Shown one piece after another: positions 19,694-25,193 of a stretch of 56,880 nucleotides of DNA. Below the pieces are notes generated by a model, which was not told where the DNA came from, ran no database searches, and was given only the letters and a program-made list of their open reading frames with translations. Location: contig JAADVB010000110.1 of assembly GCA_023334545.1 (NCBI GenBank), positions 1-56,880 on the forward strand. The letters run 5' to 3'. Position 1 is the stretch's first letter, and every line of letters begins with the position of its first letter. This DNA comes from Salisapilia sapeloensis CBS 127946. Its lineage: Eukaryota; Protista; Oomycota. Both the position numbers and the translations under genes were made by a program.

Positions 19694-21109
19694 ATGAGCT
19701 TTTTATTCCGGAAGTTGCGACCTGGGACAGTGGCTCGAGTCACCGCCCATGCACGTCATGGTATCCAACGATCGACTCGACTTTCAAGCAATAGACTCCA
19801 GACGTCTCCCATTACGTCTCCCACCGTCCGAAGCTTTTCGGATATGGGCCACTCCAAGGACTGTATCGTGCTTTCGGCCGATGCGCCTGAGTCCTTGACC
19901 TCGAAGCTGCAGCTGAGTCCAGCAACAGTGTGGCACTTGCACCAGCACGTCGCAACGGGTGAACAGAACGCCTTTTACGTCGTCGACACGAGCGCCGTGG
20001 AAACTCGACTTAACCTATGGAAGGAGTACTTGCCACAAGTACGCCCATTCTACGCTGTCAAGTGTAACCCAGACACGGAAATTGTTCGAGCACTCAAGGA
20101 GCTCGATTGCGGCTTCGACTGTGCCAGTCTCGGTGAGATTGAAGCTGCGTTGAAGCACGGTGCTCGTCCAGAAGACATTATCTACGCGAATCCGCTCAAG
20201 CAGCCTTCCCACATCGCTCATGCAGCGTCGAAAGGTGTGGATATGATGACTTTTGACTCTGTCGAGGAGCTAGAGAAGATCAAGGCTATTCATCCGAGTT
20301 CGAAATTGGTGCTACGTCTGTATGTCGATGACTCGCATTCTGTCTGTCAGCTCGGCACCAAGTTCGGAGCGATGCTGCACGATGTCCCGGAATTGTTGCG
20401 TAAAGCACAGGAACTGGAGCTGAATGTCATTGGCGCGAGTTTCCACGTCGGCAGTGGATGCTACAGCGCGAAAGCCTTCTCCGATGCCGTTGTCTCCGCC
20501 CGTCAAGCATTCGACATTGGCGCGTCCATGGGCATGGACTGGAAGCTTTTGGACATTGGCGGTGGGTTCCCAGGATCGAATAATGGTGCAATTACGTTTG
20601 AGGACTGTGCGACAGAACTACAGCAGTCGCTGGCTACTCATTTCCCATCGACGACTGGCATTAAGATCATCTCGGAACCTGGACGCTTCTTTGCCGAAAG
20701 CACGCACACGTTGGCAGTAAATGTAATTGGTAAGAAGAAGGAGCCGAACGTGGATGCAAGTCACGATGGTAACGCAAAGTACATGTACTTTGTCAATGAT
20801 GGTCTGTACGGGTCCTTCAATTGCCTCGTGTATGATCATGCAGAAGTGCAACCGGTTGTACTCAGCGATGAAGACGTGACTGAAATGCAGCCGTCTAGCT
20901 TGTGGGGACCAACGTGTGACGGATTGGATTGCATCGCCCAAGACGTTCGTATGCCATTGATGGAAATTGGTCAGTGGATCTGTTTCCCAAACCTTGGCGC
21001 CTACACAAGCGCAGCAGCATCCAACTTTAACGGTTTCGTACCACCGAAGAAGATTTACTTTGACGGGAGTGACCCAGGCGATAAGCAAGAACCAGAGTTC
21101 GTGCATTAA
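19694..21109 (+). CDS. ODC1: Ornithine decarboxylase (PLP fold III) with a putative mitochondrial presequence
   Basis: Motifs FYAVKCN (PLP lysine), FDCAS, FHVGSG, LDIGGGFPG, EPGRFF and WGPTCDGLD. The N-terminal 49 aa are R/S/T-rich and lack D/E. Confidence 0.96.
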   Translation: MSFLFRKLRPGTVARVTAHARHGIQRSTRLSSNRLQTSPITSPTVRSFSDMGHSKDCIVLSADAPESLTSKLQLSPATVWHLHQHVATGEQNAFYVVDTSAVETRLNLWKEYLPQVRPFYAVKCNPDTEIVRALKELDCGFDCASLGEIEAALKHGARPEDIIYANPLKQPSHIAHAASKGVDMMTFDSVEELEKIKAIHPSSKLVLRLYVDDSHSVCQLGTKFGAMLHDVPELLRKAQELELNVIGASFHVGSGCYSAKAFSDAVVSARQAFDIGASMGMDWKLLDIGGGFPGSNNGAITFEDCATELQQSLATHFPSTTGIKIISEPGRFFAESTHTLAVNVIGKKKEPNVDASHDGNAKYMYFVNDGLYGSFNCLVYDHAEVQPVVLSDEDVTEMQPSSLWGPTCDGLDCIAQDVRMPLMEIGQWICFPNLGAYTSAAASNFNGFVPPKKIYFDGSDPGDKQEPEFVH

Positions 21110-21568
21110 TGTTTGGAAAGGAACATGAGATGGAGAAATAATCATCAATACGCAGCATCAATTTTGAGGTCTTATTCGATAGTACTTGGGATAGAAAGGA
21201 TAGTCCTAAGCATAGGAGTATGTCTACTATCATCCTATAAATCCATTTCAACATGCCATACTAAAAGCAATATGTCATCTTTGATTCCTTTGTTATTACT
21301 GTCGTTTCGAGTGTTGCATGGCTTTATCTATGTCGTCTACTTTCACTATCCTGTCGTAGTAGAATATTCTTTGCCAGTAGTAGACAGATCTCTGGAAGTC
21401 TAATACAATTCCCAATGTACACTTGGACTTCCTATTGCTACGACATGAAAGTCGCACAACTTCCCGATTATGTCGTTCCACTTTATACCCTTCAAATTTT
21501 ATATAAAAATTGACATGCTATTTCGAGTCAGTTGAATTGTACTGCCATATCACGAATAACAAGCGGTC

Positions 21569-23290
21569 ATGGTGACCTCAACGGGTAAGCGGAAGAGAAG
21601 GAAGTGTTCGCATATCAATTGTGATAAAATTGATGCTGGAAGAGGTTTCTGCGTGCGTCATGGAGGTGGTCGCAAATGCAACTTCCAGGACTGTACGAAA
21701 GGAGCTCAAGCAGGTGGATTCTGTCGAACCCATGGCGGTGGTGCTCGATGCCGAGCTCCGAATTGCAACAAAGTAGATGCTGGAAGAGGCTTCTGTCGAC
21801 GTCATGGTGGAGGAAAGCGATGTATGTTTGAGAATTGTACGAAATCAGATATCGGAGGTGGCTTCTGCTCTGCCCATGGTGGTGGTCGAAAATGCAGTGA
21901 AGACGGATGTGAAAAGGTTAGTCAAGGCGGTGGCAAGTGCTGGTCACATGGCATTCGTCGGCGTTGCAAGGCACCAAAGTGTCGGCGTCATGTGGAGAAA
22001 GACATGGAATGGTGTCTAGTCCACGCTCTGGAGGTTGATACGGGTGTCAGGACGATCGATTCGCCACCACAGAAGCAACACGTCCAGGGGCCTGTGCACT
22101 CGACAAGTCCTGGGAGTGACCAGTCTACATCCATTGTATCTTCAGATGATGTGAGTGGCTCGAACGCAGAGCAAGCGGGATGCTGCAGCAAGTCCTTAGG
22201 CAGTCGTATTGACAGTGGCTGCGCCACGTCGTTCGGTGGCGAATGTAACTGTCCTCCGAACTGCACTTGCTGCAGCCACAATAAGCAATCCAGTCCAACA
22301 AAAAGTATACACCCAGCTACAAGTTATCAAAGTCCAAAGTTGGAACTCCGTCGACTCGTTATTAGTTTTTCCATGCCAGAAGAGTACCAGACGATCCCAG
22401 AAGACATATTCATCTCCATGGTGCGAGGGATAGAAGGCGTACGTAGTGTCCACAAGGCTGGTAACACATTCGATCCGCTCCCCATGTTTGTCCTGTACAC
22501 CGATCCAACATTGAAAGCGTCTGCGGTTATCAATGCGTTCAAGTGGACGAAAGCAACTTGTGAAATCGAAGAAGCAACGACTGTCGCGTGGACGTATCGT
22601 CAGGTAGTACTGAGTGTCCGAGCCATGATGTGTGCTGGCAACTGTGGCTCGACGGTCGTGAACGCAGCGTCGAATGTTCCGAACGTTGAATCCGCTACAC
22701 TAGACTTTCCATCTCGCCGCATTATCACAAGAGGTCGTATGTTGATATCTGAACTGCAGTCTGCCGTTGGGAGTGCTGGGTTTGAATCCCAAGTCGCTCA
22801 AGAGCGAGCGATTCCTATGACGTACAAGTACATAAGAAATGGCTCTATCTCAGCAGAGCCGGATCGATTCCGACAATGTCTACTGGATATCCATCGAGTG
22901 GAGAGCGTAATGGTCGTGAATAACGAAGTTATCGTGTCAGCGTTCTTGGACGATGATCACGCGATCGTGCAAGAAGCTGCTGTCCAAGGCTTTGAACTTA
23001 TTATCCAAGGCATGAATACGAATGCTGGTGATACGATGGATGGACGAGAGATAGTGGGTAAGGCGGATGAGTCTTCTGTGAACTCACTTTTGGAGTTTGC
23101 AGATGGACATACGTGTGATCGAGAAGTGTGTGAACGAAACCAATGTGCTCAGTATATGGCTCGACTGGCACATGAAGCAGCTTACGCTATCGGATGGAGT
23201 GTGCCTGGATGTGCGATGCAGAACGGCGGACAATGTAATTGTGGAGACGACTGCGCTTGCCCAGGATGTGAGACACACGACAATGATTGA
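21569..23290 (+). CDS. Zinc-finger repeat (WRKY19-like HGGG) + HMA + Cuf1/Mac1-type Cys-rich protein; candidate metal-responsive regulator
   Basis: Six 24-aa C-x4-C-x9-C-x2-H repeats; internal Cys cluster CNCPPNCTCCSH; HMA domain with MMCAGNC plus two degenerate HMA-like units; C-terminal CNCGDDCACPGCETH. Confidence 0.88.
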   Translation: MVTSTGKRKRRKCSHINCDKIDAGRGFCVRHGGGRKCNFQDCTKGAQAGGFCRTHGGGARCRAPNCNKVDAGRGFCRRHGGGKRCMFENCTKSDIGGGFCSAHGGGRKCSEDGCEKVSQGGGKCWSHGIRRRCKAPKCRRHVEKDMEWCLVHALEVDTGVRTIDSPPQKQHVQGPVHSTSPGSDQSTSIVSSDDVSGSNAEQAGCCSKSLGSRIDSGCATSFGGECNCPPNCTCCSHNKQSSPTKSIHPATSYQSPKLELRRLVISFSMPEEYQTIPEDIFISMVRGIEGVRSVHKAGNTFDPLPMFVLYTDPTLKASAVINAFKWTKATCEIEEATTVAWTYRQVVLSVRAMMCAGNCGSTVVNAASNVPNVESATLDFPSRRIITRGRMLISELQSAVGSAGFESQVAQERAIPMTYKYIRNGSISAEPDRFRQCLLDIHRVESVMVVNNEVIVSAFLDDDHAIVQEAAVQGFELIIQGMNTNAGDTMDGREIVGKADESSVNSLLEFADGHTCDREVCERNQCAQYMARLAHEAAYAIGWSVPGCAMQNGGQCNCGDDCACPGCETHDND

Positions 23291-23367
23291 GTGTGTAGTA
23301 GGTCAATGGTACGACATTTTTATATGGGTGGTAATGAGTTGTAAGTGTATGTGTTGCGTCTTTATCT

Positions 23368-25193
23368 CTACGTTCCCATTGCACATTTCATGCAGAGACA
23401 ATTGTCATCAGCTAGCATGCTATCGACGTGAGGAGTCGACTTGAGAATGCCTTGAGGTGTCTTGTTCGGTACTTGATCTAGCTCTTTCTTGTCCTCTTTG
23501 CTAAGTAATATGAGTGAGATCGATATCATACTCTGTAGGATGCAGCTTGATACACTTACATGGGATGATGCTACTGGTTTCGACGCTCGCTCACTAACTT
23601 TCATATCATGCTCTTGCTGTTCCTTCTTTAGCTTATACAACTGAAGCTTCTGCTTGTTATCGAACTGTTCCTTCCTCCTCTACATCCAGAGCGTTATTAT
23701 AAGACGGAGGAAAGAGACACTAAGATATGCACCTTGGTTTCATTCGCTTTCTTACGAGCACTTTCGGCGCGTTCTTGCTTTTCACGCTCTTGATGAGCCT
23801 CCTCTTCCTTTTGTTGATGGTAGTGATCTAACTTAACTTTTATTCGAGTTCGATGCTTTGCATCTTTCGCCTTATCTTGTCGATTTGGGCCGGATTCTAG
23901 TAGCTTTCTTTCCTGCTCTGCCTCTAATAGTTTCAGCCGTTCTTCGAGTCTCTTGTCCTTCCACCGCTGGACTACTTCCCGTTTCGTACGGAGGATGTCC
24001 AAGTAGTCCAAATACCATTGAAAATGCTTTCGTATAGTAGAAGCGTTTTGCGTAATGATCGTCTTGACGCACTTTCGTAGACAGCGAGCAACACGCTGAT
24101 CAACTGCTGCTTCATCTTCAGACTGGTTCGAGCAAGTGTCGAGATTGTCGCTAAGTTTATAGTGCCGAAGAAGAAGATCATCTGGTAGTTTGGAAGTTGA
24201 TAAGATATGAACAAACTGATTATGCTCCTGGGGATCCCATCCACCCGTGTGACCACCATTATCGATAATCTGCTCATCTAATACTCGTACTTGATCTACC
24301 ATTTCCTCTTCTAACGTCTTTATATCCCGCTGCGTACCACTGGATGACTTTATTTCTCGTGCACTTGTAGCTCGTCTATTACGTGGATATCTCTTTCCTG
24401 GCTTTGACAAGACATTCGAGTCATACTCCCCAGCATCAATCTTTGCTTCTATGCTTGCCAAATCACGTTCGAGATACTTTTCCTCACTAATGTAAGTGTT
24501 ATATTTTCGTCGATTGGACGCATGGACATTTGCGATTTGATCCTCCATTGCTTGAATGAGATCCTGGAGCTCAGCTGGATGACATAATCCTTTTTGAAAG
24601 GCTTCTAGTTTTACTCTGATCCTACTATGGTGTGTTTTAAGTCTTTGCAGTTCATGTCGTAGATGAGTGCCTTCCTCCTGACGGGCACGGTAGCTCTCCT
24701 CCGCTAGCTGACGTATATCTGTCCAGTAGGCACTATTAGCTGCAGTGTGCGTAGTTCCACGTTTATTTACACTATATAAAGCGTTGCAATCTTTTTCTAC
24801 GGCTGCAAGACGTTGGTCTAATATAAGCTGCTTTTCGATCCACTCTAATCCATCCTTTATCCTCTTCTTCTCTTGCTGCATAGTCTGACACTCATCAATG
24901 TCCGGTAATACACTTCCTGTAGCCTCCTCTTTCTTCCTTTGCTTTAAAACATTTGCATCCGATGACATAGACTGACGAGTAGGACCTGGTCGTCGAATGC
25001 GCTCTGTGTGCATCCCATTGCGAGAGCGAGCGATTCTGTCTTCAGACGGACGATGTGACCGGTCATCGATAATTGCTTCAACTGTCCGCGTACCTTGCTG
25101 GATCTTCTTTGAAGTAGCATACCGTCTTGTAGAAGATACTGTGTACTTGTTCGGACTAGTACATATAGGCTCCTTTGCTGGGCTACTCGACAT
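23368..25193 (-). CDS. CCDC112-like coiled-coil protein (centriolar satellite/flagellar)
   Basis: Long coiled coil containing GGHTGGWDPQEHNQFVHIL. Intron 23732-23680 (53 nt). A second intron (23559-23501) would move the stop to 23420, so the 3' end is uncertain. Confidence 0.7.

Follow-up and report, generated by a model that had tools for sequence, protein, structure and literature searches.

The window analysed here is the 56,880-nucleotide contig JAADVB010000110.1 of the oomycete Salisapilia sapeloensis CBS 127946, and the gene in question, at 21569–23290 on its plus strand, encodes a 573-residue protein in which zinc fingers are combined with an HMA domain and cysteine clusters (hereafter the ZF-HMA gene). 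An earlier reading of the bare DNA letters, referred to below as the original prediction, had proposed that this gene encodes an oomycete copper sensor; the open reading frame and the motif strings that it quoted are all in place. The features of the gene are the following.

21553..23366, plus strand: transcript, uninterrupted, with approximate ends (contigs from RNA runs)
21569..23290, plus strand: coding sequence, 573 amino acids plus stop, single exon (list of open reading frames)
21587..21604, plus strand: basic patch KRKRRK, residues 7–12, just ahead of finger 1, resembling a nuclear localization signal (NLS) (sequence)
21605..22024, plus strand: six 24-residue Zf_WRKY19 fingers (Pfam PF24906, regular expression)
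22181..22279, plus strand: middle Cys cluster, CC-x11-C-x7-C-x-C-x3-C-x-CC-x-H, in a disordered linker (sequence)
22340..22561, plus strand: ferredoxin-like unit 1, without loop Cys (secondary structure of the AlphaFold (AF2) model, pLDDT 80–90)
22595..22804, plus strand: HMA domain with a CX3C loop (Pfam HMA, E 0.017; NCBIfam CopZ, 1.6e-6)
22817..23005, plus strand: ferredoxin-like unit 3, HMA-derived, without loop Cys (AF2, hhalign)
23105..23287, plus strand: acidic C-terminal domain, with H-x-C-x4-C-x4-C, a helix (AHxAAxAxGW) and then GCAMQNGGQCNCGDDCACPGCETH (sequence)

Each of four RNA runs from the same organism yielded one contig of 1788–1798 nt covering the gene, which starts at 21553, 21561 or 21570 and ends between 23348 and 23366; over 21553–23366, these contigs match the window with no joints, no mismatches and no indels. 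Because the RNA contigs are uninterrupted and free of joints, the gene is transcribed and has no introns; its 5′ leader measures some 16 nt. Note that the four runs bear on the transcription of the gene, not on copper-dependent expression. Oomycete orthologs align end to end with the 573-residue protein (98–100% coverage).

The N-terminal part of the protein is occupied by an array of Zf_WRKY19 fingers, 24-residue units that PF24906 detects in five stretches with 108 bits, against a cut-off of 27. No other Pfam family hits the finger region, and no specific likeness to CCCH RNA-binding fingers is seen there. The six tandem C-x4-C-x9-C-x2-H repeats of the original prediction are exact for five fingers, which match C-x4-C-x9-C-x2-H-GGG-x-R as a regular expression, whereas the sixth (residues 133–152) is degenerate, with an x10 spacing and without the HGGG signature. 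The finger ligands are nearly invariant in the ortholog alignment and residues 1–160 are strongly basic (pI 9.6, 34 K+R versus 14 D+E). In a whole-protein AF2 model built on 19 orthologs, the fingers have a pLDDT of 70–80, and a dedicated model of residues 1–160 reaches 85. A profile search of the Protein Data Bank (PDB) sequences returned no solved-structure relative of the array, and Foldseek returned nothing under E = 1 with its model. We infer an NLS function for the KRKRRK patch, which is kept in a K/R-rich form (KKRxRRQC) in Peronosporales and Pythiales and is weaker in Saprolegniales.

Beyond a linker modelled with low confidence (residues 160–250), residues 258–480 form three consecutive β-α-β-β-α-β units with a pLDDT of about 90. 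The middle one is the HMA domain. The Pfam HMA profile (PF00403) gives it 15.9 bits, below the gathering cut-off of 24.8, and places orthologs above that cut-off (e.g. 40.8 bits for P0183 and 33.5 bits for P0124). The AF2 model displays the β-α-β-β-α-β order of the HMA fold over residues 338–412 with a pLDDT above 90, and Foldseek superposes this unit on MerP, PacS, HMA7 and TTHA1718 with TM values by target of 0.83–0.90 (0.87, with 30% identity, for MerP 1osd); further matches include ATP7B and CopA domains and domain I of CCS. A sequence search of the solved structures with the whole protein gave weak HMA matches only. The HMA identity put forward in the original prediction is therefore backed by the model, by the fold comparison and by the orthologs that pass the Pfam cut-off. 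The two flanking units had been described as Cys-less and HMA-like: they do lack the loop Cys, and unit 3 is clearly related to the HMA unit (hhalign 90%, E 1.7e-6), but each contains one Cys outside the loop position (C331 and C437) and the relationship of unit 1 to the HMA unit is weak (41%).

The putative metal-binding loop of the HMA unit, MMCAGNCG (residues 353–360, 22625–22648), is not the canonical M-x-C-x-x-C loop: it reads M-M-C-x-x-N-C-G and is one residue longer. M353, M354, C355, C359 and G360 are invariant in the 19 aligned sequences, so that MMCxxxC is found in 19/19, and G404–F405 are likewise invariant. This spacing, regarded as unusual in the original prediction, turned out to be nothing of the kind, CX3C being characteristic of the outer metal-binding repeats in the Cu(I) P-type ATPases of stramenopiles. 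A search with the C-terminal half alone, which covered 1.8 billion representatives, brought up proteins with one to four copies of a GMMCQKNCG[ST]TV unit, followed by canonical GMxCxxC units, at the N-termini of P-type ATPases that have DKTGT, CPC and MxxSS, e.g. the Hondaea ‘Copper-transporting ATPase RAN1’ (GBG31808) and Ascophyllum CAM9915746. CPC together with MxxSS is the established signature of P1B-1 Cu(I) pumps. The proteins with such CX3C ATPase repeats, many of them unnamed, include P0172, P0243, P0137 and P0160. In the same search, whole-protein E-values went down to 6.5e-35 (P0129), most others lying between 1e-19 and 1e-10; the HMA unit is 35–43% identical to the GMMCQKNCG repeats of the ATPases, and ordinary HMA domains match it with E-values of only about 0.02–0.1. 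By its closest sequence relatives, the domain thus belongs to an HMA subtype tied to Cu(I) pumps, that is, to copper rather than to metals generally. The likeness to the stramenopile P1B-1 ATPases concerns this Cys-x3-Cys subtype, (G)MMCxxNCG; the context differs, since their repeats precede a membrane pump, whereas the ZF-HMA protein is soluble and has one liganded copy between two ligand-less ones. We found no paper mentioning a GMMCQKNCG-type loop.

The second putatively copper-related element is the tail (pI 4.3), in which CNCGDDCACPGCETH (residues 556–570, 23234–23278) has the spacing C-x-C-x3-C-x-C-x2-C-x2-H and matches the CXCX3-4CXCX2CX2H pattern of the REP motifs of Ace1, Mac1 and Cuf1. 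In agreement with the original prediction, SpCuf1 contains a single REP motif, CXCX3CXCX2CX2H, and ScMac1 has two motifs of the form CXCX4CXCX2CX2H (PMC4992176); the offsets of AnMac1 REP-I (C339, C341, C345, C347, C350, H353) are identical to those of residues 556–570. When the tail is shuffled 50,000 times, the REP-type regular expression is matched in 6 cases; it is matched by 14 of the 19 aligned orthologs and by both brown-algal members of the family described below. GGxCxCGxxCxCxGCPxH is retained at the end of nearly all aligned sequences, and from Saprolegnia to Ectocarpus the C-terminal domain is kept as a longer module consisting of the helix and GCxMxxGxxCxCGxxCxCxxCPxH. As proposed at the outset, the middle Cys cluster, of which GCATSFGGECNCPPNCTCCSH (residues 217–237, 22217–22279) is a part, is related to the C-terminal one (hhalign 94%, E 1.5e-7); it is found in Peronosporales, Pythiales and Albugo and is absent from Saprolegniales and brown algae. 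Note that a REP-type motif does not by itself prove sensing.

The likeness to Cuf1 and Mac1 consists in the ligand spacing, shared with SpCuf1 and AnMac1 REP-I and placed in an acidic C-terminal region, and in a basic, NLS-like patch adjoining a zinc-dependent N-terminal domain. The differences are these: the fungal proteins have neither the six-finger Zf_WRKY19 array nor an inserted HMA domain with two HMA-derived units, ahead of the motif the oomycete tail additionally has a helix and a conserved GCxM, and no homology is demonstrable beyond the short motif. The copper fist (C-x2-C-x8-C-x-H, PF00649), whose absence had been noted from the start, gave no hit at E ≤ 1, the N-terminus being Zf_WRKY19, and the protein contains no GRP anywhere, hence no (R/K)GRP minor-groove motif. 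Without a copper fist and without (R/K)GRP, it is an analogue and not a member of the fungal family. An Atlas language-model search placed the tail (0.55) and a diatom relative, P0216 (0.87), near the fungal copper-fist cluster; we treat these placements as leads only.

Other copper regulators offer looser parallels. In Drosophila MTF-1, too, an N-terminal part with several zinc fingers is joined to a short Cys cluster near the C-terminus, through which copper load is sensed (PMC2396432), but the fingers of MTF-1 are of the C2H2 type, its cluster has another sequence, it has no HMA domain and the two proteins are not related in sequence. Cu4-thiolate clusters are formed by Mac1, Ace1, Amt1 and dMTF-1, whose cluster domains are alike without sequence homology (PMC2396432). 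No SBP domain was detected in the ZF-HMA protein at E ≤ 1, and its finger type differs from that of CRR1 and SPL7. Chlamydomonas CRR1 and Arabidopsis SPL7 regulate copper economy through their SBP zinc-finger DNA-binding domains, and the C-terminal region of CRR1 is Cys-rich and metallothionein-like.

Full-length orthologs, with 98–100% coverage and 29–37% identity, were found in every oomycete order sampled: in Pythium, Phytophthora, Bremia, Plasmopara, Hyaloperonospora, Globisporangium, Nothophytophthora, Aphanomyces and Saprolegnia, as well as in Albugo laibachii (F0WI82). None has an annotation beyond that of a hypothetical, ‘HMA domain-containing’ or ‘WRKY19-like zinc finger’ protein. The architecture that the original prediction had described in an oomycete setting holds across the oomycetes but is not restricted to them. 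In the search with the C-terminal half, Ectocarpus siliculosus CBN79244, automatically named ‘putative copper transporter’, was found to contain five Zf_WRKY19 units (E 7e-33), an HMA domain (3e-10) and the tail CSCGDDCRCINCPQH, and Laminaria digitata CAM9295617 has the same combination of zinc fingers, CX3C HMA and tail. In both brown-algal members the HMA unit is single, and the linker is long and disordered. The family is defined by a Zf_WRKY19 array, an HMA domain with MMCxx[NS]CG and a GCxMxxGxxCxCGxxCxCxxCPxH tail, all three present in the window protein; PITG_02325, PHYSODRAFT_310308, Albugo F0WI82 and Ectocarpus CBN79244 are named members that align end to end. Compared with the original prediction, what is new is that the architecture reaches the brown algae, that CX3C is typical of copper pumps and that the conserved module of the tail is longer than the fungal REP motif. 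The combination of a Zf_WRKY19 array, an HMA domain and a REP-type tail is unprecedented. A literature search on the family, on Zf_WRKY19/PF24906, on the ortholog accessions and on oomycete copper regulators or transporters returned nothing relevant, and the statement that no copper-responsive regulator of such form had been described stands, as no paper on the family was found.

Two Saprolegniales gene models, P0032 (Thraustotheca clavata) and P0047 (Achlya hypogyna), do not end with the Cys tail but go on into a RING finger, and P0047 contains a SUMO-like Rad60-SLD domain in addition; the Saprolegnia diclina ortholog has no such extension. The extension may be either a real fusion or the product of merged neighbouring gene models.

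Taken together, these data suggest that the gene belongs to a stramenopile-wide, uncharacterised family whose most likely function, with a probability that we put at roughly 45%, is that of a copper(I)-responsive nuclear regulator. The basic Zf_WRKY19 array and the KRKRRK patch would bring the protein into the nucleus and onto nucleic acid or chromatin; the CX3C HMA domain, of the outer-repeat subtype of Cu(I) export pumps, would be loaded with Cu(I) by an Atx1-like chaperone or out of the cytosolic pool; and, when copper rises, the acidic GCxMxxGxxCxCGxxCxCxxCPxH module would form a polynuclear Cu(I)-thiolate cluster like the REP motifs of Mac1 and Cuf1. Cluster formation would alter an intramolecular contact with the N-terminal part, and the altered contact could switch localization, nucleic-acid binding or activation, as in Cuf1, where an N-terminal NLS is masked through a Cu-REP interaction (PMC4992176). 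This proposal is supported by an intact, expressed gene in which the modules are present and the ligand residues invariant, and by a charge layout, with fingers that are basic (pI 9.6) and a tail that is acidic (pI 4.3), resembling the arrangement of a DNA-binding domain and an activation or sensor domain. The identities of the modules and the link to copper now stand on firmer ground than in the first reading; the function is put forward as a hypothesis.

Several observations weigh against this proposal. Zf_WRKY19 is not known to bind nucleic acid, and neither the profile search nor the fold search (Foldseek E > 1) connected it to an entry of the PDB; CX3C loops, for their part, are not known from biochemistry to bind Cu(I). 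The tail (residues 542–573) has no structural support, being modelled by AF2 with low confidence, as expected for a metal-dependent fold, and it is weakly, sub-threshold metallothionein-like. The RING domain added in the two Saprolegniales models hints at a ubiquitin-related role, and we found no experiment on any family member in the literature. Finally, Cys-rich tails are not confined to sensors, since a chaperone or detoxifier may also have one, an example being domain IV of S. pombe Pccs (PMC2396432).

This last point leads to an alternative that we consider unlikely, in which the protein would handle copper without any role as a transcription factor: it would buffer, chaperone or detoxify Cu(I) in the nucleus or in the cytosol, with the fingers acting as scaffold or targeting device. 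CCS and Pccs have precisely such a design, an HMA fold with a C-terminal Cys motif, and the fold comparison did return domain I of CCS; the mere binding of copper by Pccs domain IV or by the dMTF-1 cluster is enough to protect yeast (PMC2396432). Two Cys clusters and an HMA domain would give a high copper capacity, and the metallothionein similarity of the tail (13.2 bits and E 0.1 with PF00131 and PF01439, for a cut-off of 23) points the same way. Unlike CCS and Pccs, however, the ZF-HMA protein has no SOD-like domain, has zinc fingers and carries a CX3C instead of a CxxC loop. A buffer would have no need of six conserved fingers with nearly invariant ligands and of an NLS-like N-terminus, one protein per genome at an ordinary transcript level would be a poor store, and the fingers are retained in brown algae though only one HMA unit and one cluster are present there.

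About equally improbable is a zinc-structural adaptor of chromatin or of the ubiquitin pathway that would not sense copper at all, the clusters binding Zn(II) and the ferredoxin-like units serving as protein-interaction modules. Integrated HMA domains of plant NLRs and HIPPs are known to act in this way, and the HMA fold serves protein recognition in Pik-1, one of the structural matches (6r8k); in keeping with such a role, two of the three units have lost the loop Cys. In other proteins, Zf_WRKY19 is found together with RING, Med20 and KANSL2-type fingers, a co-occurrence that suggests a nuclear or chromatin context and nothing beyond. The RING and SUMO-like parts of the Saprolegniales models would fit, as would the weak likeness of the last finger to the ubiquitin-binding fingers of A20, the best match obtained with VIA-align for the finger-array model (Z 3.2); this match involves the last finger only and lies within noise, and the RING additions occur in two genomes only and may be merged models. 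An adaptor of this kind also leaves unexplained why C355 and C359, with the Met-Met pair and the Gly, are invariant in oomycetes and brown algae, why the HMA unit comes closest to the metal-binding repeats of Cu(I) pumps and why the tail has the spacing of a proven Cu(I) sensor. A copper-responsive post-transcriptional regulator whose C3H-type array would bind RNA instead of DNA is more improbable still: tandem C3H-type fingers are a format common among RNA binders and the weak fold matches include WT1–RNA and TFIIIA–RNA complexes (Foldseek E > 1, not significant), but PF24906 is the sole Pfam hit of the array, with no specific CCCH similarity, and none of these features tells RNA binding from DNA binding.

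If the family does consist of copper-responsive nuclear regulators, it could, more tentatively, be the missing copper metalloregulator of the stramenopiles (oomycetes, brown algae and perhaps more), a new class of eukaryotic sensor in which a Cu(I) cluster module of the Mac1/Cuf1 type would be coupled to a zinc-finger array specific to the lineage, and which would be embedded in a CX3C copper-trafficking network. We propose such a lineage-wide network from the presence of this HMA subtype on the copper export pumps as well. For well over a hundred years copper salts have been a main means of controlling oomycete diseases of crops, and marine stramenopiles are limited or poisoned by copper; in the literature searched we found no regulator responding to copper described for oomycetes, brown algae or diatoms. 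The ZF-HMA family offers a concrete, conserved single-gene candidate with testable parts, namely the HMA loop pair, the six-ligand tail and the finger array, and it reveals a CX3C form of the copper-chaperone fold that is specific to this lineage. Should the family sense copper, a REP-type Cu(I) cluster module would have been joined to unrelated DNA-binding domains in fungi and in stramenopiles.

Several other proteins were considered in the course of the searches. P0216, P0242, P0399, P0415, P0468, P0374 and P0462 represent a mostly metagenomic family of about 200 residues with the core FGRAMSGLSALSIDWENMEDFD and, at one or both ends, the REP-like motif GCxxxxGxxCxCGxxCxCxxCxxH, to which P0462 adds a canonical HMA domain; the sole named member is a protein from a Bacillariaceae metagenome-assembled genome, and the family is possibly a second candidate for copper sensing, in diatoms. 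P0216 and P0242, which contain two REP-like motifs each and looked fungal in Atlas, were examined as a bridge to fungal Mac1 and rejected because their homologs form this mostly metagenomic family, in which the only named member is from Bacillariaceae. P0143 (Phytophthora aleatoria KAG6955481), with an HMA domain and a bZIP, was likewise rejected as an independent fusion of a sensor to a DNA binder: it is probably a chimeric gene model, since it starts inside the ortholog, has neither fingers nor Cys tail and enters unrelated sequence ending in the bZIP. In P0226 (303 residues), the Cys-rich basic N-terminus suspected to be Zn2Cys6-like gave no such Pfam hit.

In a tree of the family, the window copy falls within the Albugo/Pythium/Phytophthora (Peronosporomycete) part, with an end branch of 2.08 against a median of 0.22. 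The upstream neighbour of the ZF-HMA gene, at 19694–21109, encodes an ornithine decarboxylase (ODC) that is 53–61% identical to its best relatives, about equally for Pythium, Lagenidium, Globisporangium, Albugo, Phytophthora and Aphanomyces. Because the ODC identities are so low, the source appears to be an oomycete without a near sequenced relative in the protein collection, and the divergence of the window copy, judged by this ODC (53–61%), is in part organismal. On the other side, a minus-strand neighbour (open reading frame 23697..25193) has two short joints near its 3′ end in the RNA contigs, 23500–23560 and 23679–23733, both with CT..AC at the ends, that is, GT..AG introns on the minus strand; the joint at 23679–23733 takes out the stop and the last 11 codons (23697–23732) of the reading frame, which alters the predicted C-terminus.

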